From Heteronotia binoei (Eukaryota): a stretch of 64,000 nucleotides of DNA. Shown in pieces: positions 15,615 to 64,000 of this stretch. Numbering within the stretch: position 1 is the first letter of the stretch; each line of letters starts with the position of its first letter. The stretch covers positions 12,276,001-12,340,000 of the forward strand of contig NC_083237.1 of NCBI RefSeq assembly GCF_032191835.1. The letters are read 5' to 3'. A program made the position numbers and the translations under genes. The notes under the pieces are model-generated. The model was not told the origin of the DNA and made no database searches. It worked only from the letters and a program-made list of their open reading frames with translations.

Positions 15615-16526
15615 CTAGCCCCCTTTTAGTTTTCTGAACGCTGACTGAACCTCCTTGTTCCTCAGAGTATAAATGGTTGGGTTCAACATGGGTGTGACAA
15701 CGTTACAGAAGATCTGGATGGGGGTGGCTAATATGTCACTCAGAGACGGCTGGGTGTAGAGGAGGGCGCAAGGCCCAAAGAAAAAGCAAACGACCGTCAA
15801 ATGCGACACGCAGGTGGAGGCTGCTTTGCGTCGGCTTTCTGCGGAGCGCATCCTGAGCACAGAGATGGCAATTCTGATGTAGGACATGAGGATGAGTACG
15901 AAGCAGGCCATGGGCACCACACCGATGTTGGTGAAGCTCACTGTCTCGATGATGTAGGTGTCTGCACAAGCTAGCTTGACCACTGGGAAAATGTCACACA
16001 AGAAATAGTCCACCACGTTGGACCCGCAGTAAGGCAGTGTGAAGGTCAGGCTAGTTAAGATAGTGGCATGGAACGAACTGGTGAACCAAGTCCCAGCAGC
16101 CAAGAGGGCACACACTCTTTGGTTCATGATAAGCGTGTACCTCAGTGGGTGACAGATGGCGGCGTAACGATCATAAGCCATGACGGTGTATAGAAGGCAC
16201 TCCGTGCTGCCCAAGAAGTGGTAGAAGAAGACCTGGCACATGCAACCGCCCCAAGAGATGGTTCTGCTCCCTGCCCAGAGGTTGGCCAAGAGCTTGGGAG
16301 TGCTGATGGAGGAGAAGCCAAGGTCTACCACAGAAAGGTTGCAGAGGAACCAGTACATGGGCGTGTGGAGGCGGGCATCACAAATGATTGCAGTGAGGAT
16401 GAGCAAATTCCCAAGCAGGGTGAAGAGGTAGAATGACAAGAAGACGACAAAGAGGATGTTTTGGAGGCCTTCGGTGTGGGGGATTCCAAGGAGAACGAAT
16501 TCCAGGATCACTGTGTGGTTGGCCAT
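15615..16526 (-). CDS. Olfactory receptor, family 10 (OR10D-like), copy A, 303 aa, intact
   Basis: Begins MANHTVILEFVLLGIPHTEGL (OR10D-type N-terminus) and carries LHTPMY, MAYDRYAAIC and PMLNPTIYTLRN. Start is set at 16526, after a pyrimidine tract and AG acceptor. Confidence 0.93.
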   Translation of the reverse strand: MANHTVILEFVLLGIPHTEGLQNILFVVFLSFYLFTLLGNLLILTAIICDARLHTPMYWFLCNLSVVDLGFSSISTPKLLANLWAGSRTISWGGCMCQVFFYHFLGSTECLLYTVMAYDRYAAICHPLRYTLIMNQRVCALLAAGTWFTSSFHATILTSLTFTLPYCGSNVVDYFLCDIFPVVKLACADTYIIETVSFTNIGVVPMACFVLILMSYIRIAISVLRMRSAESRRKAASTCVSHLTVVCFFFGPCALLYTQPSLSDILATPIQIFCNVVTPMLNPTIYTLRNKEVQSAFRKLKGG

Positions 16527-16837
16527 TCTGAATCCAATCAATGCACTGCTAAGGAGGATGGTATATATACAAAAAAGAGACACAATCTCAGTAATTATCC
16601 TTGTCAATATGTAGTGTGTTTGCTTAGTCACTNNNNNNNNNNNNNNNNNNNNNNNNNNNNNNNNNNNNNNNNNNNNNNNNNNNNNNNNNNNNNNNNNNNN
16701 NNNNNNNNNNNNNNNNNNNNNNNNNNNNNNNNNNNNNNNNNNNNNNNNNNNNNNNNNNNNNNNNNNNNNNNNNNTTATGATGATGATAATGATGATATTG
16801 AATTTATTTCCCGCCCTCTCTGAATATCAGAGTCTCA

Positions 16838-23797: not shown

Positions 23798-24709
23798 CTA
23801 ACCCCCTTCTAGTTTTCTGAACGCTGCCTGAACCTCCTTGTTCCTCAGAGTATAAATGGTTGGGTTCAACATGGGTGTGACAACGTTGCTGAAGATCTGG
23901 ATAGGGGAAGCTAATATGTCACTCAGAGACGGCTGGGTGTAGAGGAGGGCACAAGGCCCAAAGAAAAAGCAAACGACCGTCAAATGCGACACGCAGGTGG
24001 AGGCTGCTTTGCGTCGGCTTTCTGCGGAGCGCATCCTAAGCACAGAGATGACAATTCTCATGTAGGACATGAGGATGAATACAAAACAGACCATGGCCAC
24101 CATGCCGATGTTGGTGAAGCTCACCTTCTCGATGATGTAGGTGTCCGCACAAGCCAGCTTGACCACTGGGAAAATGTCACACAAGAAATAGTCCACTATG
24201 TTGGACCCACAGTAAGGCAGCGAGAAAGTCAAGCTGGTTAAGATGGTGGCATGGAATGAAGCGGTGAACCAAGTCCCAGCAGCCAGGAAGACACACACTT
24301 TCCGGTTCATGATGAGCGTGTACCTCAGTGGGTGGCAGATGGCGGCATAACGATCATAAGCCATGACGGTGTATAGAAAGCACTCCGTGCTGCCGAAGAA
24401 GTGATAGAAGAAGACCTGGCACATGCAACCGCCCCAAGAGATGGTTCTGCTCCCTGCCCAGAGGTTGGCCAAGAACTTGGGAGTGCTGATGGAGGAGAAG
24501 CCGAGGTCTACCACGGAAAGGTTGCAGAGGAACCAGTACATGGGCGTGTGGAGGCGGGCATCACAAATGATCGCAGTGAGGATGAGCAGATTTCCAAGCA
24601 GAGTGACGAGATAGAAGGACAAAAAAACGACAAAGAGGATGTTTTGGAGGCCTTCGGTGTGCGGGATTCCAAGGAGAACAAATTCCAGGATCACTGTGTG
24701 GTTGGGCAT
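23798..24709 (-). CDS. Olfactory receptor, family 10 (OR10D-like), copy B, 303 aa, intact
   Basis: Begins MPNHTVILEF; about 23 amino-acid differences from copy A by manual comparison. Confidence 0.93.
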   Translation of the reverse strand: MPNHTVILEFVLLGIPHTEGLQNILFVVFLSFYLVTLLGNLLILTAIICDARLHTPMYWFLCNLSVVDLGFSSISTPKFLANLWAGSRTISWGGCMCQVFFYHFFGSTECFLYTVMAYDRYAAICHPLRYTLIMNRKVCVFLAAGTWFTASFHATILTSLTFSLPYCGSNIVDYFLCDIFPVVKLACADTYIIEKVSFTNIGMVAMVCFVFILMSYMRIVISVLRMRSAESRRKAASTCVSHLTVVCFFFGPCALLYTQPSLSDILASPIQIFSNVVTPMLNPTIYTLRNKEVQAAFRKLEGG

Positions 24710-24828
24710 TCTGAATCCAATCAATGCACTGCTAAGGAGGATAGTAAAAAAAAAAAAACACAAACTCAGTAATTATCCTTGTCAATATGCAGTGTGTTTG
24801 CTTAGTCACTGTGGAACTCCCTATTGGA

Positions 24829-28906: not shown

Positions 28907-28945
28907 GCTTTTTGTGCTGGAGCCACCTGGCTTCCTTTTGCTGTG
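28907..28945 (-). other. V(D)J recombination signal sequence, 23-bp spacer
   Basis: On the minus strand: heptamer CACAGCA (28945-28939), spacer AAAGGAAGCCAGGTGGCTCCAGC (exactly 23 nt), nonamer ACAAAAAGC (28915-28907), directly after TGT GCT GTG AGA GG. Confidence 0.93.
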
Positions 28946-29234
28946 CCTCTCACAGCACAGAAGTAGACTCCAGCGTCGCTCAGCCTTGCCGCGTCTTTGA
29001 TGAGGTTGGTGGAGCGAGAGGCTTTGTTCACCTCCATCTGGTAGTCTCCAGCAGGAGAGAAACCTTCGTATGCCTGTCCCAGCCAAGACAGGACACCACC
29101 GGTGTGCTGTTTGTACCAATACATCTTGTCATGGCTGGTGACATTTTGATGGCATGGAATCAGAACTCTGTCCCCCTCTGTGCAGATGAGTTGCTTGGGT
29201 TGGAATACTTGGCCAAAGATAAATCTTGGAGCTA
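28946..29234 (-). CDS. TRAV: T-cell receptor alpha-type variable segment, V exon (resembles TRAV2/TRAV1/TRAV4)
   Basis: Open frame APRFIFGQVFQPKQLICTEGDRVLIPCHQNVTSHDKMYWYKQHTGGVLSWLGQAYEGFSPAGDYQMEVNKASRSTNLIKDAARLSDAGVYFCAVR. It has both conserved cysteines, the WYxQ tryptophan and DxGVYFC. Phase-1 acceptor tctctcttccccccccag|TA; followed by a 23-RSS. Confidence 0.9.
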
Positions 29235-30664
29235 CTGGGGGGGGAAGAGAGACTCAAGGTTAAAGAGGTAGAAAACCACAGAATCATACAAGAGATGGCA
29301 GCTTGACTACGCAAGGTTACTCTAGAGCACGTTTACTCTGGTCTAAGCCCATTGCTTTCAATAGGCTTAGACTGGAGTTACGCTGGGGAGGGACGGTGGC
29401 TCAGTGGTAGAGCATTTGCTTGGTATGCAGAAGGTCCCAGGTTCAATCCCCGGCAACTCCAACTAAAAAGGGGTCCAGGCAAGTAGGTGTGAAAAACCTC
29501 AGCTTGAGACCCTGGAGACTAGAGCCACTGCCAGTCTGACAAAACTGACTTTGATGGACCAAGGGTCTGATTCAGTATAAGGCAGCTTCACATATTCACC
29601 TATGCATAGGATTGTACTGTGAACTGATCTGTCAAGTCATCGTCTTACAAAGTTAATTTCCCCCTTCCCCCTCTTCTATTTAATCCTTGCCGCCTAGAAC
29701 AAATGGTGACAACTGGATGGGCCAAACTGGATGACCTTCAGATTCTGTTCCAAGAGGATAAGGTAACACTTCCCCACCCTGAATCAGCATTGGCGAGACT
29801 GGAGGTCTTCAGGAGGGGAAGGGAAGCAGTGAAATTCATTCCTCCCCCTCACCGCCTGCTGCTTCCACCACCAGCTATTTCCACTGGATTCAATCCATTG
29901 TCCAGAGCAGTGTAGAATATTGCTCCAAGAGGAAGACAGGTGACTTTCCCAGGACTGAGTACTCCATAGTGTAGGGGTATTTGTTCCGAAGGCTCCAGTC
30001 CTGACTAATCTTGCATTCACCTGCGAAGGTCACTCCAGCAGTGCCTGACCAGCAGAACTTAGAGAGCAGGGGAATTTGTATACTTCTGTCCCCTTTTTTT
30101 CCCAGTATCCTCTATNNNNNNNNNNNNNNNNNNNNNNNNNNNNNNNNNNNNNNNNNNNNNNNNNNNNNNNNNNNNNNNNNNNNNNNNNNNNNNNNNNNNN
30201 NNNNNNNNNNNNNNNNNNNNNNNNNNNNNNNNNNNNNNNNNNNNNNNNNNNNNNNNNNNNNNNNNNCGCCCTCCACTCCGAAGAGTCTCAGAGCGGCTCA
30301 CAATCTCCTTTCCCTTCCTCCCCCACAACAGACACCCTGTGAGGTAGATGAAGATATTGGATTTATATCCCGCCCTCCACTCCAAAGAGTCTCAGAGCGG
30401 CTCACAATCTCCTTAATCTTCCTCCCCCACAACAGACACCCTGTGAGGTGGGTGGGGCTGAGAGGGCTCTCGCAGTTGCCCTTTCAAGGACAACCTCTGC
30501 CAGAGCTATGGCTGACCCAAGGCCATTCCAGCAGGTGCAAGTGGAGGAGTGGGGAATCAAACCCGGTTCTCCCAGATAAGAGTCCGCACACTTCACCACT
30601 ACACCAAACTGGCTCTCCACACCAAACTGGCTCACCATAATAGAGAATAGCACATAAAGTTGCT

Positions 30665-30884
30665 GAACAAAGCAGGAGTCCAGTATCACCTTTAAGACCA
30701 ACGAACTTTTATTCAGAACATAAACTTCCATGTGCATGCACACATCTTCAGACGAGGAATGAGGTACAGTAAGCAGAGCTCACTCCTCATTCCTTGTCTG
30801 AAGATGCGCGCATGTGCACGAAAGCTGACATTCTGAATAAAAGTTTGTTGGTCTTAAAGGTGATACTGGACTCCTGCTTTGTTC
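30665..30884. mobile_element. Penelope-like element remnant as an inverted repeat (about 100-bp arms) with degenerate hammerhead cores
   Basis: gaacaaagcaggagtccagtatcacctttaagaccaac is mirrored at the right end. Each arm carries CTGAAGA-stem-GAAA-like sequence. Confidence 0.75.
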
Positions 30885-30964
30885 TGCTGCTTCAGAGCAA
30901 CACGGCTGCCCACCTTGATCTATGTAAAGTTGCTATTAAGGACACATGCCAGAAAATGACTCAC

Positions 30965-30992
30965 CAAGGATGAAGAGAAAAATGAAGCGCAT
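30965..30992 (-). CDS. TRAV: Leader exon of the TRAV gene (MRFIFLFIL)
   Basis: ATG CGC TTC ATT TTT CTC TTC ATC CTT G|gtgagt: consensus donor, phase 1. It joins the V exon in frame to give the signal peptide MRFIFLFILVAPRFIFG followed by QVFQP. Confidence 0.8.
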
Positions 30993-31539
30993 CCCTGTTA
31001 GAGGGACAGATGCATCCATCTCTCTTTCCCACCAATAAGGAGAATGCTTAGCCACGCCTGATTCTTATGAGGCCCTCCATCCTGAGATCAAATCATGCTG
31101 AAAGCGATTAAGTTCTGAGAACTGAGAACGCACCTGCAGTGCTGCAAAAGAATCGAGGCGTTCACTTTAATCTACAGGGTAAAACAAACCACCGTCGTTA
31201 GCTGACAGCTCTCCTCATAAGAGCCCCGTGGCGCAGAGTGTTAAAGCTGCAGTACTGCAGTCCTAAGCTCTGCTCTGAGTTCGATCCCAGCGGAAGCTGG
31301 TTCAGGTAGCCAGCTCCAGGGGACCTTTCCTCCTCACAATATTTGTCAGTCCCATTTCACTTTACAATTCTGTTAAGCGCATAATCAGTTTTGAGGATGA
31401 GCTGATCGGCTGCCTGTCTTAGACCACTTTCTTCAAAGAGTTGTTGCTGTTCAGTCGCACAGTCGAGTCCGGCTCTAGAGAGGTTTAGAAAAAAGTGTCA
31501 TGGGTAAGGAAGTGCTGCGGAAGACCCAAATCAAGACCC

Positions 31540-32270
31540 AAATCACTATGTATGGAATGTGCAAGTTGGACAGTGAAGGGGGGTGGAAATGATTCATTCA
31601 AAATGTGGTGTTGGAGGAGAGTTTTATGAATACCATGAACTGCCAAAAAGACAAATAAATAGGTTCTAGCTTTTTTAAAAAAGAGGGGGGCTGAATTCTC
31701 CCTAGAAGCTAAAATGACTAAACTGAGCCTATTGTATTTTGGTCACATTATGAGAAAACGAGTCACGGGAAAAGACAAACATGCTAGGAAAAGAGGAAGA
31801 CCCAACGTGAGATAGATTGACTCTTTGGCGGTTTTGAGACTGACTTTCTGGAGGTTTTCAAACAGTCTAGATGGCCTTGTAACAGCAAGACTGGTTCTGT
31901 GAACTTAGGCAGATCATGAGAAGGAGGGCAGGAAGGGGTCGCATCAGTGTTTAATTCTTGTGGCCGTTCCTTACAAGCCCAGGGAAATGCTGTTTGCCAC
32001 TTTGGGGTCAGAAAGGAATTTTTCTCCACGGCAGTTTGGCCAGGGATCTTGGAGGGGGATGGTTTGCCATCTTCTGGGCATGGAGCAGGTGACACTGGTA
32101 TATGGGGGGGGGAGGTATTTGTGAATTTCCTGCATTACGCAGGAGGTTGGACTAGATGTCCCCAGAGGACCCTTCCCACTCTATGATTCTATTCTATGAC
32201 TCCGTCAAGAAAGCCACGGCCTTCAGTTTGCAAGACCTGAGGCAAGGTTGTTAATGATAGGATGTTTTGG
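31540..32270 (+). mobile_element. RTE/Bov-B-like LINE 3' fragment, split by a CR1-derived insert
   Basis: Degenerate translation resembles MYG.ESWTVK...MWCWRR...SLEAKMTKL.L.YFGHIMR...GRP.RWIDS; homology resumes at about 32200. Confidence 0.75.
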
Positions 32271-33114
32271 ATGCCCTCACCATAATTCAGAAATGATGGC
32301 CCTTAACATACACACAGATTCATGGAAGACAGATTTCTCAATGACCAGGAGCCACTGAGAACTTCTTTGGACAGAGACAGAGTGCCTAGACCGCCAGCCA
32401 ACGAGAGATGGGAAAAGAGGAACAGACTCGATAAAGGGATTTTAAATGGGCTCCTATGTTTCGAGTTGCGTTTAAAGAGCCTTTCTTCTAGGGGCACCGC
32501 ATTAAATATCATGACTAAAGATCTTATCAGTGCCTTTCGCAGTGTGAGCTGCCATTGATTCGAGTCTCTTACCGCGCTGTCTCAAAAAGAAATGGAGAAA
32601 AAGTGAAGGACGGTAACCTTCTCTTGTCATCGTGCTTTCAAATTCAGTCCTCCGTCGGGTAAAGTTCAGCCTTTCCGCTTGCCGTTTTCTGATGAAACAA
32701 GGCTAAACAACATACGTTGTCATTGCCAACGCAACAGCCAGTGTGGTATAGCGGCTGCAGCATCAGTCCATGATTTGGGAGACCAAGAAGTTTGCTGGGG
32801 GTTTGCACAGACTTTCAGCCTAACCTACCTCACAGGGTTCTGAGGCTAAAATGGAGGACAGAGGAATGGTTTAAGCTACCTTGGGGGTGCCCACTGGAGA
32901 AGGAGGTGTATGAATTAAATAAATAACAAGCGAGTAAGCAGAACCAAAGCCTCTGCTTCTGTTTTAAATGCACCACTCCCCTTTCCTCAGTCCCGCCAAA
33001 ATCTACAAAACCCAAATTGTCATTTGTTTATTCCTGTTCCTCTCCTGCCCTCTTGTGGTCCTTTTGTCTCATTCTTCAAAATGATCCATTTACAGAAAGA
33101 GCCAAGTTGGGGGG

Positions 33115-33340: not shown

Positions 33341-34112
33341 AACTCCTCCAGGGTACACGCAGCCTGTCCTTGTTCCAGGAGTGGGCCATGAGCTGTCTGG
33401 AGGCTTCCGGTCTGCCTCTTTCCCCGCCGGTTCTCTCTTCCCCACCAGCTCTCTGCCCCTTTCCCCGCTGAGCTGGCAGTCTGTAATCACCCATGGTTTG
33501 CTTTTCTCATTTTGTCTTCACAACAACCTTGTGAGGGAGGTTCAGCTAGCCCAAAGTTAACCAGGGAGCTTCATAGCAGAGATTGGATTTGAGTTATAGA
33601 CCAACACTTTAATCTAGAGTTACCATATTTTGAAAAGCAAAAAACAAACAGAGGATACATTTCCTGACTGACTACTTTAAACAAGCCGTCACTATGACAA
33701 ATCTCATTTTATTTTATTATGTGTTCAATTTCTATCTCACTCTTCCTTTGAACAGGCTCAGGGCGGGTTTCAGCAGTGATTATAAAACAATAAATCAGCC
33801 ATTTGAAAACTACAAAAGCCTTAAAACCTAATAAGATGGAGTTCAAACTATTTAAAGCTGTTTCCATGATGATCAGAGAATCAGAACGAGTGTTACATTT
33901 CCCCTAGCAAAAGTTCCGTCCGATTGTCACTTAGATATCAAGGTGGGCCAGGGGTGATACCATTCAAACTGTCCAGAAGCTTTGTGCTCCTTAATAACGC
34001 CCTTGGAGATTCTGTGTCACCAGTTCTGATCTCTGTGGGATCAACTTGCTAAAAGTTCAGAGCGAACCGACATTATTTCGCGTGAGGCTGTTCCTAGGCA
34101 AACACACGAGGT

Positions 34113-36021: not shown

Positions 36022-36903
36022 NNNNNNNNNNNNNNNNNNNNNNNNNNNNNNNNNNNNNNNNNNNNNNNNNNNNNNNNNNNNNNNNNNNNNNNNNNNNNNN
36101 NNNNNNNNNNNNNNNNNNNNNNNNNNNNNNNNNNNNNNNNNNNNNNNNNNNNNNNNNNNNNNNNNNNGGAGAGGTGGAAAGAAAGCAATTTTAACTAAAT
36201 TCATTTTCCAAGCCATGGGCTGACTTGGAAGGAAGGAAGATTGGGGGGGAGAAGCGGAAAGAAGGTAACTTTAAATGCACTCTACAAGCTGCTAGTTGGC
36301 TTTAAAGATTTAAAGAGACAAATGCCTTCTTCAAGAAGGCCAATAAGGCAGCAGTGCTTTGAGAGCCACACAATATGTGTGAAAGAGCCACAGTTTGGCC
36401 ACCCCTGATCTAGTAACAGCATGCCAAGGTTTGGTTTCAATCAGCACCATTATTTAGCTGAGTTTCCTCTTGAAAAATCACTGGGGTGATCTGGTCACAG
36501 AAGTCTATTTCGATACTGCAGTCTTATCCTAGGATCTCCTGGCTATTCTACACAATAAGTATTATTTATAGATAATGTAACTTAAATGCAATCTCTTCTT
36601 CCAGTCACCTGTCATTCAATCCTTTAGTGGCATATAAAATAGAGGAGACGGAACATAAAATACAGATTGCTTTTTAGATAGCAGTTGGACAAATATACCA
36701 TCAAATTGACTTTTTATGTCTTATCACAATGCAACTTGATGGCGCATTGCAAAAATGCAGCCACCTTCTCAGTTATGTCCAGAGAGCAGTCATTCAAGAT
36801 ACAATGAATCTTAATGGGGGTTGGAGATATTTAGTGTGAATTTCTGCATAGAATGGAGAGTAAAAAATAAACAGTTCCCCTGCCCGCTCCCCTTCCTATA
36901 GAG

Positions 36904-38008
36904 CAGGGGTGGCCAAACTGTGGCTCAGGAGCCACATGTGGCTCTTTCACATATATTGTGTCTCTCACAGTCCTCACTGCCCCATCAGCCAGCTTGGAGA
37001 AGGCATTTGTCTCTTTAAATCACTTTGCCAAGCCAGCCAGCAGCTTGGAGAAAGCATTTATAGTTAAAGTTGCTTTCTTTNNNNNNNNNNNNNNNNNNNN
37101 NNNNNNNNNNNNNNNNNNNNNNNNNNNNNNNNNNNNNNNNNNNNNNNNNNNNNNNNNNNNNNNNNNNNNNNNNNNNNNNNNNNNNNNNNNNNNNNNNNNN
37201 NNNNNNNNNNNNNNNNNGACATTTATTCTATGTATTTATTTATTCTATAACTTATACCCCGCCCTTTCCATAAAATGGCTCAGGGCGGCTCACAGCAAAC
37301 GATAAAACAATAAAACAAAGTACAGAATTATTACAATTAAAAAGTCGAAGCATTTAAAAACCTAAAAACCTTAAATTCTTAACATTAAAACTATTCAATA
37401 TAATTCACTGAAGTCTAATAAGCTACATTTATCCAGTCAGGCGTAGGCTAACCGGAAGAGGGTTGTCTTACCGGCCCTGCGGAACTGAGTAAGATCCCGC
37501 AGGGCCCTCACCTCTTCCGGTAGCTGGTTCCACCATGTAGGGGCCATTGTAGAAAAGGCCCTGTCTCTAGTTGTCTTGAGACGGACTTCCTTATGCCCGG
37601 GGATGGTGAGAAGGTTTTGAGTCCCAGACCTCAGTACTCTCTGGGGAACATGTGGGGAGAGACGGTCGCTCAGGTAGGCAGGTCCCAGGCCATATAGGGC
37701 TTTAAAGGTAATGACCAGCACCTTGTACCGGACTCGGTATGTTATTGGGAGCCAGTGCAAAGCCCGAAGACCCGGCCGAATGTGCCCCCACCTTGGGAGG
37801 CCCAATAACAGCCGGGCCGCGGCATTCTGCACCAGCTGCAATTTCCGGGTCCGGCACAGGGGCAGCCCCATGTAGAGGGCATTACAGTAATCCAACCTCG
37901 AGGTGACCGTAGCGTGGATCACTGTTGCTAGGTCGTCGCGGTCCAGGAAGGGGGCCAACTGCCTTGCCCCTATGTGGCTCTTATGTTAAGCAAGTTTGGC
38001 CATCCCTG
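36904..38008. mobile_element. hAT MITE (CAGGGGTGGCCAAAC) interrupted by an L2 LINE
   Basis: TIRs at both ends; TSD ctatagag/ctacagag. Confidence 0.8.
37230..37970 (-). mobile_element. L2 LINE 3' fragment
   Basis: ORF 37437-37958 contains TSRLDYCNALYMGLP...LQLVQNAAARLL...LHWLP, the L2 signature; (AAAT)-like tail. Confidence 0.92.
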
Positions 38009-39043: not shown

Positions 39044-40018
39044 ATGGAAATGGATGAAAAGGTGACTCCAAACTGGACTTTGGCAGGGCAAAACCAGACC
39101 TTGGTGACCGAGTTCATCCTGGTGGGCCTCTCCAATGACCCCAAGACCCAGCTGGTTCTCTTTGTGGTCTTCCTGGTGCTCTACCTGTTAACTTTGACCG
39201 GCAACTTCCTCATTGTGGTCACCATCATGCATGACCGAGCCCTCCACACACCCATGTACTTCTTCCTGAGCAACCTCTCTTTCATTGACATCTGTCACTC
39301 CACAGTGACCGTCCCCAAGATGCTGGCTGACTTCCTCTCCTCCGAAAAGACCATCTCCTTTGGAGGTTGCGTGGCTCAGATGTTCTTTCTTCACCTCTTC
39401 GCCTGCACCGAAATCTTCCTTCTCACTGTCATGGCCTATGACCGCTATGTGGCTATTTGCAATCCTATGCACTATCTCACTGTCATGAGCCACAAAATCT
39501 GCTTACTGTTGGCTGGAACGATCTGGCTGGGCGGTACGGTCCATTCTCTCGCCTTAATTGGCATGACCCTCAAGCTACCCTACTGCGGCCCCCAGGAGGT
39601 CGACAACTTCTTCTGTGACGTTCCTCCAGTCATCAAGCTTGCGTGCACCGACACATACATCATCGAGGTCGTCCTTATTGTTTCCAACTCAGGGCTGATC
39701 TCCGTGGTCTGCTTTGTGGTGCTGGTGGTCTCGTACGGGGTCATCTTGGTCTCCCTTCGCAACCGTTTTGTGGAAGGCCGGCGCAAGGCTCTTTCCACGT
39801 GCGCGGCACACCTCACGGTGGTGACCCTCTTCCTGGGGCACTGCATTTTCATTTACTCCCGCCCCTCCACCAGCTTCAAGGAAGACAAGGTGGTATCAGT
39901 CTTCTTCACGGCTGTGACCCCGTTGCTCAACCCCATCATCTACACGCTGCGGAACGAGGACATGAAGCGAGCACTCAACAAACTGGTTGGGCGGAAGGTG
40001 AACATGGAGAAGAAGTGA
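39044..40018 (+). CDS. OR4E1: Olfactory receptor, family 4, OR4E1-like, 324 aa, intact
   Basis: FLSNLSFIDICHSTVTVPKML, QMFFLHLFACTEIFLLTVMAYDRY, LIVSNSGLISVVCFVVLVVSY and KALSTCAAHLTVVTLFLGHCIFIYSRPSTS closely match mammalian OR4E1 as recalled. Confidence 0.93.
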   Translation: MEMDEKVTPNWTLAGQNQTLVTEFILVGLSNDPKTQLVLFVVFLVLYLLTLTGNFLIVVTIMHDRALHTPMYFFLSNLSFIDICHSTVTVPKMLADFLSSEKTISFGGCVAQMFFLHLFACTEIFLLTVMAYDRYVAICNPMHYLTVMSHKICLLLAGTIWLGGTVHSLALIGMTLKLPYCGPQEVDNFFCDVPPVIKLACTDTYIIEVVLIVSNSGLISVVCFVVLVVSYGVILVSLRNRFVEGRRKALSTCAAHLTVVTLFLGHCIFIYSRPSTSFKEDKVVSVFFTAVTPLLNPIIYTLRNEDMKRALNKLVGRKVNMEKK

Positions 40019-40961
40019 AGGTCCTTCTGAACAATGTAAAACTGGGGCAGTGCAGTATCTGGACCACAGTAGGCCCACAAGTAGGGTTGTCAGCCTCTTG
40101 GTGGAGCTTGGAGATCTACCAGAATTATAACTGATCTTCAGTCTTCTTCCGTGTTCCCACCAACCGCTTTAGGAAGAGGCAGAGAAGGCAGCGCTGTTTG
40201 ATCTTAAAGTGGGTCATAGGGACAAGAACAGTTTTGCAAATATGTGACACTATTGGGGTTGCCAACTTCCAGGAGGGGCCTGGAGATTCCCCCAGAATGA
40301 CAAATGGTCTCCAGTCTGTAGAGATCAGTTCCCTTCAAGAAAATGGTGGGCTTGGAAGGTGGAGTCTATGGAATCACATGCCTACTGAGATCCCTCCCTA
40401 AATGCTGGCCTCCCCAGGCATTGCCCCAAAATCTCCAAGAATTCCCCAGCCAAGAGTTGGCAACCCGACCTAGAGGAGAATCTGTTCTCCAAAGCAATGC
40501 AGCTTCTGTTTTTTTTTAACATTCTTGCTCCTGTTGATCTAGTTTGGTGTAGTGGTTTAGAGCAGCAGAGTCTAATCTGGAGAACTAGGTTTGCTTCCCC
40601 ACGCCTCCACACACAGTTGCTGGGTGATCTTGAACTAGTCACAGTTCTCTCTAGAGCAGTTCTCACAGAGCTGTCTCAGCCCCACCTACCTCACAGGGTG
40701 TCTGTTGTGGGGAAGACGATGGTAAGCTGCNNNNNNNNNNNNNNNNNNNNNNNNNNNNNNNNNNNNNNNNNNNNNNNNNNNNNNNNNNNNNNNNNNNNNN
40801 NNNNNNNNNNNNNNNNNNNNNNNNNNNNNNNNNNNNNNNNNNNNNNNNNNNNNNNNNNNNNNNNNNNNNNNNNAGCAAAATCTTCCAAAACCATTGCTTG
40901 AGCCATCCTCTGTGGTATCCCAAGCTGAATCAAGATTACCACATCTGCCCAAAGGTATATG

Positions 40962-53947: not shown

Positions 53948-56900
53948 TGGGGAGGGGCTGTGGTTCAGGGGTAGAGCAGTTGCTAGGCATGCAGAAGGTC
54001 TCATGTTCAATCCCCAACATCTTCAGTTAAAACGGATCTGAGGTAGTAGGAGATGTGGAATAGAGGATGGTGTGGAATTGTTTTCTCTGGCCCCAGAAGG
54101 TTGGCCCCAGAACCAGTGGGTTGAAATTAAATCAAAAGAGCTTCTGGTTCAATATTAGGAAGAACTTCCTGAGTGTTAGAGCGGTTCCTCAGTGGAACAG
54201 GCTTCTTCAGGAGGTGGTGGGCTCTCTTTCCTTGGAGGTTTTTCAACAGAAGCTAAATGGCCATCTGACAACGATGAAGATCCTGTGAATTTAGGGGGAG
54301 ATATTTGTGAGTTTTCTGCATTGTGCAGGGGGTTGGACTAGGTTACTAGGGTTGCCAAGTCCAACTCCCAAAATATCTGGGGACTTTGGGGGTGGAGCCA
54401 GGAGACTTTGGGGGTGGAGCCAGGAGACACTAGGGTGGAGCTAAGGGGAAGGGGGGGAAACGGCACTGGGGAACGTGGAGAGCCGCCCCGTCTCGGAGCG
54501 GGCGATGCCGCTGCGCAGCTGCCGCCTCTTCTCTGCTCGCCGTGGCTGCTCCTCCGAGTTGGGCTCAGGCTGGGCCCATCTCGGAGGAGCAGCTGCGGTG
54601 GAATTGAAGGGGAGGGTGGAGGCGGGCCGGGGTCGTGGCGAGCCACGAGTCCGGGTCCTAGAAGGGCCCGGATTCACGGCTCGCCATGCTCCTGGCCTGC
54701 CTCCACCCTCCCCTTCTCTGGTTTTGCCTCGGAGGCGGGGCGGGCGATGCCACTGTGCAGCTGCCGCCTCTTCTCCACTCGCCGTGGCTGCTCCTTCGAG
54801 ATGGGCTCAGCCTGGGCCCATCTCGGAGGCGCAGCTGCGGTGGGCGGGGAGGGGGTGGCAGCGGCGCGGCAGCTCCTTGGCGCCGTTTCCCCCCGCTTCT
54901 GTTTTTGGGGGGAGCGGGGGAAGAGGCTGGAAATCCTGGGGTCCCCCGCCAGGGTGGGAGGGTTGGGAAGCCTATAGGTGACCCTGAAGGTCTACGATTC
55001 TATGAGATGTGAAAGACCTCTGCCTGAGAGCCTGGAGAGCTGTCACTCATCTAAATAGACAACACTTACTTCGAAAGGAAAAGGGTCTGATTCAGTGTAA
55101 GATGCTATACGTGAATAAAAAAATGCATTTACAAAAATGTGGGGCTGTTATGTTTTCCAAAGCAGCCTCCCTTCCACATTTAATGGGTCACCCAACCCCC
55201 TGTCCTCAACAAGTTCTTAGAATCATAGAGTTGGATCTCTAGGGCCATCAAGTCCAACCCTCTGCACGATGCAAGAAATTCACAAATACCAACACCCCCA
55301 CATCCCCATTGACTTCTGCTCCATGCCCAGAAGATACCAGGAAATCTCCAGGACTCCTGGTCAAACTGGCCTGGAGAAAAAATTGCTTCCTGATCCTAAA
55401 GTGGTGAACAGCATTTCCCTGGGCAGGTAAGGAAGGGCCACGAGAACTGACGCAACCCTTCCTGCCTTCCCTTTCATGAATTGCCTGTGTTCTAGGCTTC
55501 CCAATCCCCAGGTCCCAGAGGGGGATCCCCCGGTTTTACAGGCTTTCCCCCTCCCCCAGCCAGCTGGCCGGCGGGGGAAGCCCCGCCCCCACAGCTATCA
55601 TGCCAGTTTGGTGTAGTGGTTAAGTGTGCGGACTCTTATCTGGGAGAACCGGTTTTGATTCCCCACTCCTCCACTTGCAGCTGCTGGAATGGCCTCAGGT
55701 CAGCCATAGCTCTGGCAAAAGTGATCCTTAAAAGGGCAGCTGCTGTGAGAGCCCTCTCCAGCCCCACCCACCTCACAGGGTGTCTGCTGTGGGGGAGGAA
55801 GGTAAAGGAGATTGTGAGCCGCTCTGAGACTCTTCGGAGTGGAGGGCGGGATATAAATCCAATATCTTATCTTATCTTATCTTATCTTATGCACCTCCAT
55901 GAACGATTCCCATAGGGAATGATGGGGAATTGATCCGCGGGTATCGGGGGCTCTGGTGGGCGGCTGTTTTTTGAGATAGAGGCACCAAATTTTCAGTATA
56001 GCATCTAGTGCCTCTCCACAAAATACCCCACAAATTTCAAAAAGATTAGACCAAGGGGTCCAATTCTATGAGCCCCAAAAGAAGGTGCCCCTAGCCTTCA
56101 TTATTCCCTATGGAGGGAAGGCATTTAAAAAGGTGTGCGGTCCCTTTTAAACGTGATGGCCAGAACTCCCTTTGGAGTTCAATGATGCTTGTCACACCCT
56201 TGTTCCTGGCTCCACCCCCAAAGTCTCCTGGCTCCACCCCCAAAGTCCCCAGATATTTCTTGAATTGGACTTGGCAACCCTACTGTATTCACAGAATCAT
56301 CTTGGCTGTCAGAAGGCCATCTAGCCAGCCTCTGTTTGAAAACCTCCAAAGAAGGTTTCTTCTAGCCTTCACATTGGCAGCCTAATCAGTCATTTCAGGG
56401 TGCAGCTCTGAGAAGCTAAAAAAGTCCAGGCCACACCCACTGCGTGAGATAGCATTACAGTGCAGCGGCATGAAGAGCTACAGTTGCCTTCAACAGGGCT
56501 TTTTATGTAGAAAAGGCCCAGCAGGAACTCACTTGCCTATTAGGTCACATCCCCTGATATGAGTGTAACCAGGGCTCTATTTGTAGCAGGGACTTATTTA
56601 CATATTAGGCCACACACCCCTGATGTAGCCAATTCCATAATCACCACCTATCATTAATATCTGGAGGGGGGGGATTAGACCATTTCTCCCCTTTGCATTG
56701 TTTATTGGATCAATTATACTGTTTTTATTTCATTATTCTCTAATTTTGTACTTCAGTTTTACTGCATGTGTTGTATATATTATTTCTTGATTGCATCATT
56801 TTCCAATTCTGTAAACCTACCTTGAATCTAAGTGAAAAAGATGGACTATAAGTAAATATTTTAATATTGTGGGAGCTGAACACACATGACTTCTCTAGAC

Positions 56901-59973: not shown

Positions 59974-62900
59974 TCAGGACACAAAGTCTTTCAGGTAGGC
60001 CGGTGCCTGGCGTTCCCTGGTTGACCTCCTCGGGGTTAATTGGGGAGTTGGTGCGGCTGCCAAGGCTGGCGGGGCGGTTGTTTCCCCGTGTTGGGGTGAC
60101 GCCGGACGATGACTGTCCGTCGCTTGTTGCTTGTCAGGAGTCCCTTCTCTGGTGAGGTTGCTTCTGCCGCTGTGGTGCTCTTCCACCCGTGCAGTTGGTG
60201 CGACCAACATGGGAAGGGTATCTTCCGGGGGTGTTGCTGTCAGTTCTTCCCCACTTCCCCCGCCCCCCATGGCTGTCGGTTTCTCTGGCAAAGTGTTGCA
60301 GCGTAGCTGATCGATATGCTTCCTAAGGATCTGGCCCCCCTCTGTCGAGACCTCGTAGGAGCGGGACCCGGTCACCCGCAGCACCCGGGTGGCTAACCAC
60401 TCTGGGCCACTCACAAAGTTTTTCGCGTACACTGGATCCCCTGGAAAGAACCCCCTAGTGGCTTCCCTGGTTTCGGGGGAACTGCGGAGGTCTGTGGCCC
60501 AGTCGGGGTGCAACCGGTCTAGTCTCGTGATCAGCTTCCTCCCCATTAGCAACTTTGCAGGGCTCAACCCAGTGATGGGGTTGAGGGTGATTTGATTATC
60601 TAATAGGAAGGCTGCCAGGCGGTGGTCCCAATCCCCCTGTACAATGCGCCCCAGGGCCTCTTTCATGGTGCACACCATGTGCTCTGTTCGGCCATTGGTG
60701 GCCGGATGGAAGGGGGCAGACCGGATGTGTTGTATTAGGTATCTGTTCAAGAACTCCCGGAATTCCCGGGAGGTGAAAGCGATCCCATTGTCCATGACGA
60801 GGGTATCGGGAATCCCATGCATGCAAAAGACCCTACGCAAGGCTCTGACCACCGCCGCCGTGGAGGTTGAAGCTACTAGAATAACTTCCAACCACTTGGT
60901 GTATGCATCCACCAGAATAAAGAATATTTGGCCCTGGTATGGCCCCACAAAGTCTAGGTGTAACCGGGACCACGGCCTCCTATTGGACTCCCAGCGGTGG
61001 ACAGGGGCACTGGGCGGATCAGGCCGGAACTCTTGGCAGGGTTGACACCTTCAAACCCACCCCTCAGTCTCTTCCTCCATTCCCGGCCACCACACATAGC
61101 TGCGTGCTAGGGCCTTCATCTGCACTATTCCTGGATGTGTTTCGTGTAGGGCTTCCAGCACTTGTTTCCGCAATGGGGGGGAAACCACCACCCTACTTCC
61201 CCAGAGAAGGCACCCCTTGTGTGTGGACAGTTCTTCCCTGCGCACTGCGAAGGCCCTGAATTCTGCGGCCTGTTTACCCTCAGGCCATCCCCGCCCCACC
61301 CAGTCTAAAACACGGGCGAGGATGCGGTCTCGACCCGTGGCTTTAGCTACCTCAGCGGTGTGGAGGGGCCTCTCTGGTAGCGTCTCAATAAGTATCACAT
61401 GGTGGACCGGGGCTGGGGCTGGGTCCATAGAGGGCAGCGGCAGGCGGCTGAGGGCGTCCGCATGTCCCATAGCTTTGCCCGGGCAGTGGACCAGGGCATA
61501 TGTGTAGGAATTGAGGAACTGATTCCACCACAGGACGCGCTGCGACAGAATTTGCGGCGTCTGGCAGTCTGGGGCGAGAAGGCCCAGGAGTGACTTATGG
61601 TCCGTGGCGATCGTGAAACACCTACCGTACAAGTAGTCGTTAAATTTATGCACCCCCACCACGATTGCTAAGGCCTCTTTGTCAATCTGGGCGTAGTTGC
61701 GCTCAGCAGGAGTCAGGGTCCTTGAATAATAGGCCACTGGAACCTCCCTCCCATCCGGGAGTTGGTGCCCCAGGACAGCGCCCACCCTGTATGGGGAGGC
61801 ATCACATGACAGAATCACTGGGAGGGATTCGTCAAAGTGGTGGAGCACATCGTTAGAAACTAGGAGGCCCTTGACTGCCTGAAAAGTGGCGGCCTGCTGC
61901 TTTCCCCAGACCCATGGGACGTTTTTATCCAGGAGCCTATGAAGGGGTTCCGCAATGGCTGCTTTGTGTGGCAAAAATGAATGGTAAAAATTTAATAATC
62001 CTAAGAAACTTTGTAGTTCCGCCTTGCACGTGGGGGCCGGGGCGTGGACAATTGCCTTGGTCTTGTCGGCCGTCGGGTGGATCTCCGCGGTGTCTACTGC
62101 AAACCCCAAGAACGCTACCCACGACACCCCAAGGGAACACTTTTCCCACTTAACTTTGAGTCCCACTGGAAACGGTGGAGTACCTCACGCAGACGGCTGC
62201 TGAACTCTGAAGTGTCCGGGGCGGCGATCAGAACATCGTCAAAAAATGATTGCACTCCAGGGATCCCTTTAAGGAGAGAATCCATTATGCTCTGAAAAAT
62301 CCCCGGAGCCACGCTTACCCCAAATTGTAACCGCCGCACCCGAAAAGCTCCCCTGTGAGTCACAATGGTTTGGGCTTCTGCCGTCTCGGTGTCTACCGGA
62401 AGTTGCTGGTATGCCTGAGCCAAGTCCAGTTTCCCAAAAACCTTAGAGCCTGCTAGGACTGCCAGTACGTGGCTGACTACGGGAATGGGGTATGGGTTGT
62501 CTTGCAGTGCCTTGTTTATGGTGCACTTGTAATCGGCGCATATGCACACATTCCCATTTGGCTTCATTGGGGTGACTATCGGTGTTTCCCAGGCGGCGTA
62601 GGACACCGGTTCTAGCACCCCCTGTGCCGTGAGGCGGTCCAGCTCCGCTTCTATTTTAGGTTTAAGAGCGAACGGGACCTGCCTGGCCTTGAGCCTTATC
62701 GGTCTCATGTGGGGATCGAGGGGTAAGGTGATGGGAGGTCCCTTATAACACCCCAGGGACCCATCAAACACTTCCGGGAATTTCCAGCACAAATGCTCAA
62801 AATTCTGCGTTCGCATTTGCTGCACCCCCACAATTTGAATGCCCAACGGTCGAAACCAGGCCAGCCCCAGTAAAGTGGTGAGCTGGCGTTTGACTACTAG

Positions 62901-64000
62901 TATTTCCAGCTTGCCCTTGAAGCTCTTATACTCCACCCTTACCGTGGCCCAACCCAAAACCTGTATGGGGTTTTTTTGGAAGTCCCGCAGTATGAAATCG
63001 GCTGGCCGCAGCCTGAAACGGCCCCTGGAGCAAAGTTTTCTAAGCAACTCCTCCGAGATTATGGAGATGGAGGAGCCCGAGTCCAGCTCCATTAGGCATG
63101 GGGCGCCCTCGATAGAGACCGACACCCTGACCTTGTTGGGGGTGGTGAGGGGCAAGTTCATTACCTCCAGGCTCATTGATGCGGTCAAGCATGCCTCCAT
63201 CAAGTCGTGGTTGGTGGACTGGCACCTGCGGGTCACCTTGGCCCGGCAAGCCCGTGCTGTGTGGCCCACTCTCCCACAGTTCCTGCAGTCCATGTTCCGA
63301 TAGGGGCAGTCCGGTCTCTCGTGTGGATCCCCACAGCTGGCGCACTTGGTGTTGGCTAGTCTCTCCATTGCTCATGGTCTCGTGGGTGCCCTTTGGCCTG
63401 TTCCTAGTTGGCGATGGAGCTGGTTTGCCTCCTCCTCCTCTGGGTGGCCCGGTGCTGTTTCTTCCTGGTGGACAGCTTCTGCTCGCAGGTTGTTGTAGCT
63501 TTTGGTGGCTCTCTCGAACGCGATGGCTTCATTGAAGGTGCTCTGTAGGGTGAGCTCCTCTTTCGCGAAAAGCTTTTGCTGTAGCCTTTCATCTCGGAGG
63601 CCCCAAACAAATCGATCCCTCAGGGCTTCGTCCAGCTTGTCGAAGCTGCAATTCCCCACGATTTGGTGGAGGGCAGCCAGGTAGACTGCGGCCGTCTCTC
63701 CCACCCCTTGATCTCTCCTGTGAAAGAGAAATCGGCGGGCGATGAGGGATGGCTGAGGCAAGAAGTGCCTGGTCAGGAGTCTGACTATCTCCTCGTATGT
63801 TTTCTCCGTGATCTTCGCGGGGGCCAAGAGACCCTTGGCGATCTCGAATGTGGCCTCCCCGCAGACACTCAGAAGCACGTCTCTCTTACAGCTCTCATCA
63901 GTGATCAGGTTTGCTCTTAGGTAGCAGTCGACCCGCTCTGTGTAGGTCTCCCACCTATCGGGGTTGGCCGGGTCAAACTCTGCAAGGTGGCCCGTCGTCA
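59974..64000 (-). pseudogene. Ty3/Gypsy (Mag-like) gag-pol, inactivated
   Basis: Gag (EFDP...WETYTER) begins at the window edge, followed by two Cys/His knuckles, protease LDSGS, RT FFDD, RNase H and a DDE integrase. In-frame TGA stops at about 63372 and 61051, and a frameshift at about 62165. Confidence 0.95.

Follow-up and report, generated by a model that had tools for sequence, protein, structure and literature searches.

What is a single antigen-receptor gene segment doing among olfactory receptor (OR) genes, and is it a working gene or a relic? The question arises in a stretch of 64,000 nucleotides (nt) from Heteronotia binoei (RefSeq assembly GCF_032191835.1, contig NC_083237.1, forward-strand positions 12,276,001 to 12,340,000), referred to here as the window, in which a first-pass annotation made from the letters alone had marked a variable (V) gene of T-cell receptor (TCR) alpha type at positions 28907 to 30992. 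Our analysis establishes that the feature is a real, intact germline antigen-receptor V gene segment. We further consider it very probable that it is an apparently functional germline V of the TCR alpha/delta-locus type, that is, a distal (5') TRAV of the TRA locus interspersed with OR genes.

The whole gene lies on the minus strand and consists of a short leader exon, a phase-1 intron, an open V exon and an adjoining heptamer-23-nonamer recombination signal sequence (RSS). The V exon (28946-29234) encodes the end of the signal peptide (V-APRFIFG) followed by the V region QVFQP...YFCAVR(G). The phase-1 translation is V plus APRFIFGQVFQPKQLICTEGDRVLIPCHQNVTSHDKMYWYKQHTGG...DAGVYFCAVR with zero stops, and the full reading of the exon, V-APRFIFG-QVFQPKQLICTEGDRVLIPCHQNVTSHDKMYWYKQHTGGVLSWLGQAYEGFSPAGDYQMEVNKASRSTNLIKDAARLSDAGVYFCAVR(G), is likewise stop-free. 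The landmark residues are the first cysteine at 29154-29152, the tryptophan at 29118-29116 and the second cysteine at 28959-28957, and C27, W39 and C92 are invariant across the alignment of the family described below. The exon matches the Pfam V-set domain with an E-value of 8.3e-10 (39.3 bits against a cut-off of 26), the AlphaFold2 model of the domain is a V-type beta sandwich with a mean predicted local distance difference test (pLDDT) score of 87.9, and an NVT sequon is present in the V region. Only a 75-amino-acid (aa) piece of the gene appears in the list of open reading frames (ORFs), because that bacterial-style list begins at an internal methionine. The exons, splice sites, landmarks and RSS, all read directly, together with the V-set match, uphold the earlier description of an intact V gene with a split leader and a 23-RSS. 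Its statement that this is the sole V in 64 kb also stands, as neither tblastn with the V nor a general V-domain hidden Markov model (HMM) run on the six-frame translation detected a second one in the window.

The leader exon, L-PART1, occupies 30965-30992 on the minus strand and comprises the ATG (30992-30990), eight further codons and one base, giving MRFIFLFIL plus the G at 30965. Its donor, TTG followed by GTGAGT, fits the consensus, with the GT at 30964-30963. In a scan of about 3.7 kb (29235-33000), this exon was the most hydrophobic phase-1 ATG-to-GT candidate, and no comparable alternative was found on the near side of an assembly gap that lies in the intron. The ATG at 29287 was rejected as a leader start, being in the wrong frame relative to the V exon. 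A second, in-frame ATG at 31019-31017 falls within the 5' flank (30993-31110, minus strand), a putative promoter region in which blocks above the leader ATG align with the Phrynosoma locus, for example GGGCCT..TAAG and GGCT.AGCAT.CT. The phase-1 leader intron (29235-30964, minus strand) measures about 1.73 kb, including the gap of estimated length, and its GT...AG ends were read directly. At the V-exon acceptor the pyrimidine tract is intact and runs ...ctcttcccccccAG, with the AG at 29236-29235.

The RSS (28945-28907) abuts the V exon, starting two bases past the last full V codon. On the minus strand it is formed by the heptamer CACAGCA (28939-28945; consensus CACAGTG), a spacer of 23 nt by direct count (28916-28938) and the nonamer ACAAAAAGC (28907-28915), which agrees with ACAAAAACC at 8 of 9 positions. 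A loose pattern, CACAG-N25-ACAAAAA with at most one mismatch, has a single match on both strands of the 64 kb, the RSS of the V gene itself. Since about 0.6 matches to this pattern are expected by chance in the window (128 kb over the two strands), the significance of the signal rests on its position at the end of the V exon and on its conservation in orthologues. At the same place, the orthologues carry the heptamers CACAGTG, CACAGCG or CACGGTG, and a spacer of 23 nt likewise separates heptamer and nonamer in Phrynosoma, turtle, alligator and Xenopus. Varanus keeps CACAGCG; its nonamer is degenerate and its spacer reads 22-23 nt.

A word-indexed search of a collection of 5.8 billion proteins with the V exon returned no matching protein or transcript, and the close relatives of the gene were reached only by an exhaustive search of representatives. 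This search yielded V domains from Phrynosoma platyrhinos (KAH0626237.1; 67% identity), sea turtles (CAM4647991.1; 56%), Alligator (A. sinensis XP_025046929.1; about 49%) and the frogs Xenopus (X. tropicalis XP_031761762.1), Leptobrachium and Ascaphus (40-46%). A further search added the V exon of Varanus komodoensis, 58% identical to the window V and contained in a gene model named 'olfactory receptor 4E1-like' (P0204). Across the lineage, aa identity ranges from 38 to 67%, and the shared signature is QVFQP...C.QN.TS.D.M.WYKQ...FLG.GYDGT..AG.F.M.V..A.RST.L.RD.A.L.DAG.YYCAVRD. All fetched orthologous loci have an L-PART1 of 9-11 codons ending in phase 1, with a junction that reads ...L and then V-A/S-P-.... 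The ATG and donor of the window leader align with those of Phrynosoma (MFSTFFFLL+G) and of Varanus (MSSIILCIIL+G, where the leader is part of the NCBI gene model), and the turtle and Xenopus leaders follow the same short phase-1 design. In the maximum-likelihood (ML) tree the squamate genes group as (window,(Phrynosoma,Varanus)) with a support of 100/99, inside a ten-member squamate-turtle-alligator-frog family supported at 99/87. The branching of this family broadly follows the species, with frogs first off and squamates as one clade. The sister position of the window V to Phrynosoma plus Varanus, for which a support of 100/97 is also given, suggests a source among squamates other than iguanians and anguimorphs, for instance a lacertid, a skink or a gecko.

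The strongest indication of what kind of gene this is comes from where its relatives are found. On chromosome 1 of Xenopus tropicalis, 45 kb separate the family V (L006 10704-10988) from TRDJ and constant exons downstream on the same strand, and these exons match human TRDC at 88 bits. Between the V and TRDJ-TRDC are four more V genes and one OR, and another V plus an OR lie just upstream. The family V of alligator and turtle is found inside arrays of ordinary TRAV-like V genes: in alligator it is fused with an ordinary 'CALSD' V in one gene model, and in turtle other V genes stand 1-5 kb upstream. In Phrynosoma the downstream OR is followed, at a distance of 8.5 kb, by a typical TRAV-like V (CALE) that has a canonical 23-RSS and lies on the same strand. 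As in the window, the V of Phrynosoma and Varanus adjoins receptor genes called 'OR4E1-like', and the OR between V and TRDC in Xenopus is labelled 'olfactory receptor 1509-like', names that are NCBI pipeline labels based on similarity and not proven orthology. The mammalian TRA locus is built in the same way at its 5' end. The human locus carries OR10G2 between TRAV1-1 and TRAV1-2, and OR4E2 separates TRAV1-2 from TRAV2. Mouse TRAV1 and TRAV2 have Olfr1509, 1508 and 1507 between them, and the sheep TRAV nearest the 5' end is surrounded by three ORs (PMC4574546).

The arrangement of a V among OR genes is thus an old conserved block, as the concordance of frog, squamate and mammal is otherwise hard to explain, and the V lineage and its OR neighbours have been together since before the split of frogs and amniotes. 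The first-pass annotation was correct that mammalian TRAV1 sits in the same OR context (PMC4574546). It overstated the case in calling the gene 'hidden' and 'isolated', given that the placement of a V among OR4E-like genes is a conserved one, shared by Phrynosoma, Varanus and Xenopus and corresponding to the 5' end of the TRA locus in mammals: the V gene is ordinary rather than hidden or exceptional, and its OR context is expected. Squamates have lost TRD (PMC11754216), so a lineage that lies near TRDC in frogs can only serve as a TRAV in squamates.

If the window V is such a TRAV, a promoter ahead of the leader exon would drive transcription, and splicing would remove the 1.7-kb leader intron. 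In a thymocyte, RAG1/2 would cleave the DNA at the 23-RSS, and the V exon would be joined to a TRAJ with a 12-RSS. The resulting V-J-Calpha chain would be translated with the predicted signal peptide MRFIFLFILVAPRFIFG, or with a longer one if the ATG at 31019 is used; cleavage would take place ahead of QVFQP, and the chain would pair with a TCR beta or a squamate 'epsilon' chain. The analysis demonstrates gene anatomy, orthology, purifying selection and synteny; we infer the linkage to TRAJ and TRAC, the rearrangement and the expression of the window V. Several observations weigh against this reading, and they are considered here and in the following paragraphs together with the explanations that they would favor. 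The 64-kb window contains no J (joining) segment, no constant exon and no other V, so the linkage of the gene to TRA is by analogy only. A search with the Phrynosoma orthologue found no rearranged V-J-C chain and only two germline models in which V and OR are fused, a result limited by the length window of the search and by sparse lizard transcriptomes.

One such explanation is a gene that looks intact but has been retired, a relic no longer rearranging or expressed whose reading frame is open by chance or because the loss is recent. The lack of any matching protein or transcript in the 5.8-billion-protein collection would fit this explanation, as would the distance of more than 29 kb to the next V. 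So would several peculiarities of the gene itself: a non-canonical heptamer that departs from the consensus at positions 6 and 7; a cysteine in framework region 1 (FR1; TGC at 29184-29182, minus strand), an unpaired third one, where the other squamate and turtle orthologues have tyrosine; a region spanning FR2 and complementarity-determining region 2 (CDR2) that is four codons (3+1) shorter than in the other two squamates; and a leader intron swollen by three transposon insertions. However, the gene shows no stop or frameshift, its splice sites and polypyrimidine tract are intact, its nonamer keeps eight of the nine consensus bases, and its indels are in frame and located in a loop-bearing region. 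Heptamers of the CACAGCA type are reported to be common in squamate TCR segments, including those of TRB, in a study which also notes that functionality has been shown for non-canonical RSSs (PMC11754216).

The pattern of substitution also argues against retirement. The terminal branch of the window V in the protein tree is short (0.12). Ratios of nonsynonymous to synonymous divergence (dN/dS), computed by the Nei-Gojobori method (NG86), were 0.31 for the window and Phrynosoma, 0.49 for the window and Varanus, and 0.20 for Phrynosoma and Varanus, and the proportion of nonsynonymous differences (pN) was significantly below that of synonymous ones (pS) in each of these pairs, with one-sided Fisher p-values of 3.8e-5, 7.4e-3 and 6.5e-9, respectively. 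These pairwise comparisons show that the V evolved under purifying selection among squamates. The earlier suggestion that the gene may be under selection therefore holds, with dN/dS of 0.2-0.5 among squamate pairs and Fisher p-values from 4e-5 to 7e-3 where the window is included, and the selection is of the purifying kind. On the other side of the balance, dS is partly saturated and inconsistent among pairs, the sister pair Phrynosoma-Varanus having the largest value, and for that reason selection on the window's own branch cannot be separated. Taken together, we regard a retired gene as unlikely and a functional TRAV as the better account.

Which class the V belongs to has to be argued with some care, since the sequence taken alone points elsewhere. 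When the window V was used as a single phmmer query, its best matches were mouse Vbeta8 chains, with 42-43 bits for beta-only chains and about 37 for several Valpha chains, a slight preference that the first-pass annotation had not noticed. An assignment to alpha thus does not follow from this sequence by itself. With a family profile as query, the ranking of structures in the PDB was different. Its best single-domain matches were TRAV4, TRAV26-1 and Vdelta1, at about 60-62 bits, and among its top 60 PDB matches there was no Vbeta-only chain; the immunoglobulin (Ig) kappa domains of two single-chain variable fragment (scFv) chains, for which scores were given domain by domain, reached about 25-32 bits. 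In a single-chain alpha/beta construct, the best-matching stretch shifts from the beta to the alpha domain when the family profile is used, and the turtle orthologue alone likewise prefers alpha chains. Every sequence relative that bears a name is a 'TCR alpha chain V region' entry, except for one hyena 'TRDC protein' record. In the Foldseek search with the AlphaFold model, the top 50 matches listed were TCR entries with a template modeling (TM) score of about 0.8, and those among them that could be traced to a chain name were all alpha chains. The profile and fold searches, in which Valpha and Vdelta are the best single-domain matches, thus sustain the proposed TCR alpha-type identity as alpha/delta type rather than Ig. 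The resemblances that the first-pass annotation had proposed fared unevenly: the likeness to TRAV4 and TRAV26 agrees with the family profile, which leads with TRAV4 and TRAV26-1, and the likeness to TRAV1 is not borne out, as no TRAV1-2 chain appears among its top 60 PDB matches despite the many deposited structures from mucosal-associated invariant T (MAIT) cells.

The tree places the family on the side of named fish TRAVs and ordinary TRAV-like V genes, apart from the clade with the named mammalian TRBV, on class labels that are heuristic (the motif after the second cysteine), with one named TRBV and seven named TRAVs from fish as anchors. The branch between the alpha-like and beta-like sides is weak (48/88), and an approximately unbiased (AU) test does not reject a grouping of the family with the beta-like clade (difference in log-likelihood 18.6, p = 0.19). 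Given this weak deep branch and the lack of significance in the AU test, our class call does not rest on the tree. The assignment to the TCR alpha/delta type is based on synteny and on profile and fold matches, of which the genomic context is stronger evidence than sequence and fold; the tree agrees with it and does not statistically exclude beta. Two mammalian sequences fall near the family, in a wider clade of 27 members supported at 99/96: V domains with the motif ...SVYWYLQ... from a Crocuta crocuta record named 'TRDC protein, partial' (P0165) and from Vombatus ursinus (P0146). They may be the nearest mammalian relatives of the lineage.

A beta-type identity would make the window V either a TRBV orphon or a V of the squamate 'TCR epsilon' (TRE) locus, which arose from a TRB duplication. 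Besides the single-sequence ranking, which places mouse Vbeta8/TRBV13 chains first, and the unrejected grouping in the AU test, this identity would account for the CDR1-FR2 motif H..MYWYKQ and the FR1 cysteine (ICTEG), both of which recall Vbeta genes. Moreover, Vepsilon genes were at first mis-assigned to TRAV or TRBV by an automatic classifier, as reported by Gambon-Deza (10.1101/2023.09.04.556186). The location of the gene argues otherwise. TRB lies between MOXD2/DBHL, with trypsinogen genes, and EPHB6 or an EPHB5-like gene (PMC11754216), whereas the window V has ORs on both sides and its flanks in the window consist of ORs and transposons only, which does not fit a TRBV location. The TRE locus, found between SLC43A3/RTN4RL2 and SLC43A1, is derived from beta and absent outside squamates (PMC11754216; 10.1101/2023.09.04.556186), and a TRE V is contradicted by the OR flanks and by the clear orthologues in turtles, alligator and frogs, with the frog orthologue 45 kb from TRDC. 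The V also ends in CAVR and not in CASS, the family-profile and fold searches favor Valpha and Vdelta, and the best tree sets the family with the named fish TRAVs, away from the named-TRBV clade. We therefore consider a beta-type V very improbable, and the alpha/delta reading is retained below.

The remaining weakness of the gene structure is the assembly gap of 151 N at 30116-30266, within the leader intron, over which the link from leader to V has to be drawn. Between the gap and the V exon are 882 nt, and between the gap and the leader exon 699 nt; it interrupts no reading frame, and the V exon and RSS lie on one unbroken stretch, independent of it. Its upper edge is directly abutted by a high-copy short interspersed element (SINE; 30267-30617), which is partly tandem-duplicated and of which the window contains up to 17 further copies. 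Also present in the intron are an inverted repeat (30657-30892) with 108-nt arms that are 86% complementary, which is probably a foldback or an insertion like a miniature inverted-repeat transposable element (MITE), and a tRNA-derived SINE on the plus strand (29384-29598; at least three other window copies, with an Rfam tRNA match of 47.6 bits at 29390-29461). Roughly 570 nt of the intron is transposon sequence. Without transposons and gap the intron is about 1 kb long, like the introns of the ungapped orthologous loci, which range from 0.5 to 1 kb (987 nt in Phrynosoma, about 855 nt in Varanus and about 500 nt in turtle). As the N gap sits in the leader intron, the contiguity of leader and V and their spacing are unproven by the assembly itself; they are supported indirectly, because the ungapped orthologous loci have an aligned leader of the same design 0.5-1 kb upstream of the V and because the gene order across the gap is colinear with Phrynosoma. 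A wrong join of leader exon and V exon is extremely improbable, for although a gap of estimated length next to a high-copy SINE is a typical mis-join site, the leader aligns with those of ungapped loci in the same order and orientation, the flanking ORs keep the Phrynosoma order, the reduced intron matches the orthologues in length, and neither the V exon nor the RSS depends on the gap.

With a functional TRAV as the preferred reading, the biological meaning of the gene can be considered. V gene families normally turn over by birth and death, and the deep conservation of a single V, unusual under such turnover, could mean that it recognizes a conserved ligand. Mammalian TRAV1 recognizes MR1, a conserved non-polymorphic ligand. 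By extension, one could imagine the window V as a low-copy, positionally fixed segment that recognizes a conserved non-polymorphic ligand, serves an innate-like or semi-invariant T-cell subset and was re-routed from delta to alpha in squamates, an idea that we hold to be a long shot. Positional equivalence to TRAV1/TRAV2 is plausible. In contrast, neither sequence orthology to TRAV1 nor a function resembling that of the MAIT-cell V is supported by the tests made. MAIT alpha chains head the Foldseek list, but their identity is 25% and their E-values do not differ from those of other Valpha chains. The semi-invariant or unconventional T-cell role suggested at first for the window V is pure speculation.

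More broadly, if the alpha/delta assignment is true, squamates would have kept this lineage under purifying selection after deleting TRD, and the gene would be a candidate for asking what became of V genes shared between alpha and delta after that loss. The analysis adds to a squamate genome one correctly delimited, probably functional TRAV that is seemingly unannotated there. It also exposes a recurrent error of public annotation, in which the family V or a neighboring V is mis-modeled.

Examples of this error were found in three of the species. Gene models that fuse a V exon with an OR occur in Phrynosoma (KAH0626237.1; L001 10001-19410), Varanus (P0204; L005 10001-14407) and Xenopus (L006 3610-7727). 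They read through the RSS, and the Phrynosoma model starts at an ATG inside the leader intron. The Varanus fusion model is the one that itself bears the name 'olfactory receptor 4E1-like', and the Xenopus model fuses a neighboring V to an OR. These models are annotation errors and not real fusion proteins. A different case is Xenopus tropicalis XP_031761762.1, called 'Ig heavy chain Mem5' (L006 10001-59779), which models a TCR delta chain but carries the name of an immunoglobulin. Its V-J join was made by computational splicing and not by rearrangement, because the 'CDR3' is germline sequence (56073-56156) that includes the J heptamer. The Xenopus model P0018, in which the family V is spliced onto germline TRDJ-TRDC, was rejected as a rearranged Vdelta-Jdelta-Cdelta chain, since its locus shows a germline V spliced to a germline J including the heptamer; it is evidence of proximity to TRDC and not of usage.

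The window contains six intact OR genes. Four of them lie downstream of the V and share its strand, and the other two are upstream and on the opposite strand. The upstream gene at 39044-40018 (plus strand; Pfam 7tm_4, E = 2e-48) shares 86.7% aa identity with the neighboring OR of Phrynosoma, which has the same relative position and orientation and whose 90%-identity cluster includes a Sceloporus 'olfactory receptor 4E1-like' protein, and 84% with the OR portion of the 'OR4E1-like' model from Varanus. The 'OR4E1-like' genes that adjoin the V in other squamates are its orthologues. In Varanus this orthologue (L005 13445-14404) is found downstream of the V and in the same orientation, which implies that the V-OR block was locally inverted or reshuffled between squamate lineages. 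The downstream gene at 23798-24763 (minus strand; 7tm_4, E = 6e-48) is about 51% identical in aa sequence to the OR that Phrynosoma has downstream of its V. In the interval from the V to the upstream OR, a non-coding block of 76 nt (window 34000-34075, Phrynosoma L001 7302-7380) is conserved at 76% identity, 4.8 kb upstream of the V exon in the window and 2.7 kb upstream in Phrynosoma; it might be a regulatory element or an old repeat. At 59974-63878 on the minus strand are the ORFs of a Ty3/gypsy-type long terminal repeat (LTR) retroelement, with a zinc knuckle, a weak aspartyl protease, reverse transcriptase, RNase H, and the zinc-binding and core domains of integrase. The element is split over several ORFs and is thus probably broken. 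Further assembly gaps of 137-146 N each occur at 16633-16774, 36022-36167, 37081-37217 and 40731-40873, and the first of these directly adjoins the OR ORF at 15615-16631 on its 5' side, so that the GTG listed as the start of this ORF may not be the real one.

The known systems close to the window V include its reptile and frog orthologues, which belong to the same V lineage and share the short phase-1 L-PART1, the junction and the 23-RSS, with the same OR neighbors in squamates and Xenopus. The window V differs from them in the FR1 cysteine in place of tyrosine, in the heptamer CACAGCA and in a longer, transposon-filled intron; in Varanus the orthologous OR is on the other side of the V, and in turtle and alligator the family V stands among other V genes with no OR within 10 kb. 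With TRE and TRBV genes the window V has in common a V with a 23-RSS, some beta-like residues in CDR1 and FR2, and the CACAGCA heptamer known from squamate TRB (PMC11754216), whereas its flanking genes are others and its lineage lies near TRDC in Xenopus. The nearest known case is the set of mammalian distal TRAVs interspersed with OR10G2 and OR4E2. There too, at the border of the TRA/TRD locus, a split-leader V with a 23-RSS stands alone between OR4E/Olfr1509-type ORs, and the modeled structure of the window V is likewise of the Valpha type. The identity of the window V to TRAV1-2 chains is about 25%, its family profile prefers TRAV4, TRAV26-1 and Vdelta1, and its surroundings are richer in ORs than the mammalian distal TRAV region, with six in 64 kb.

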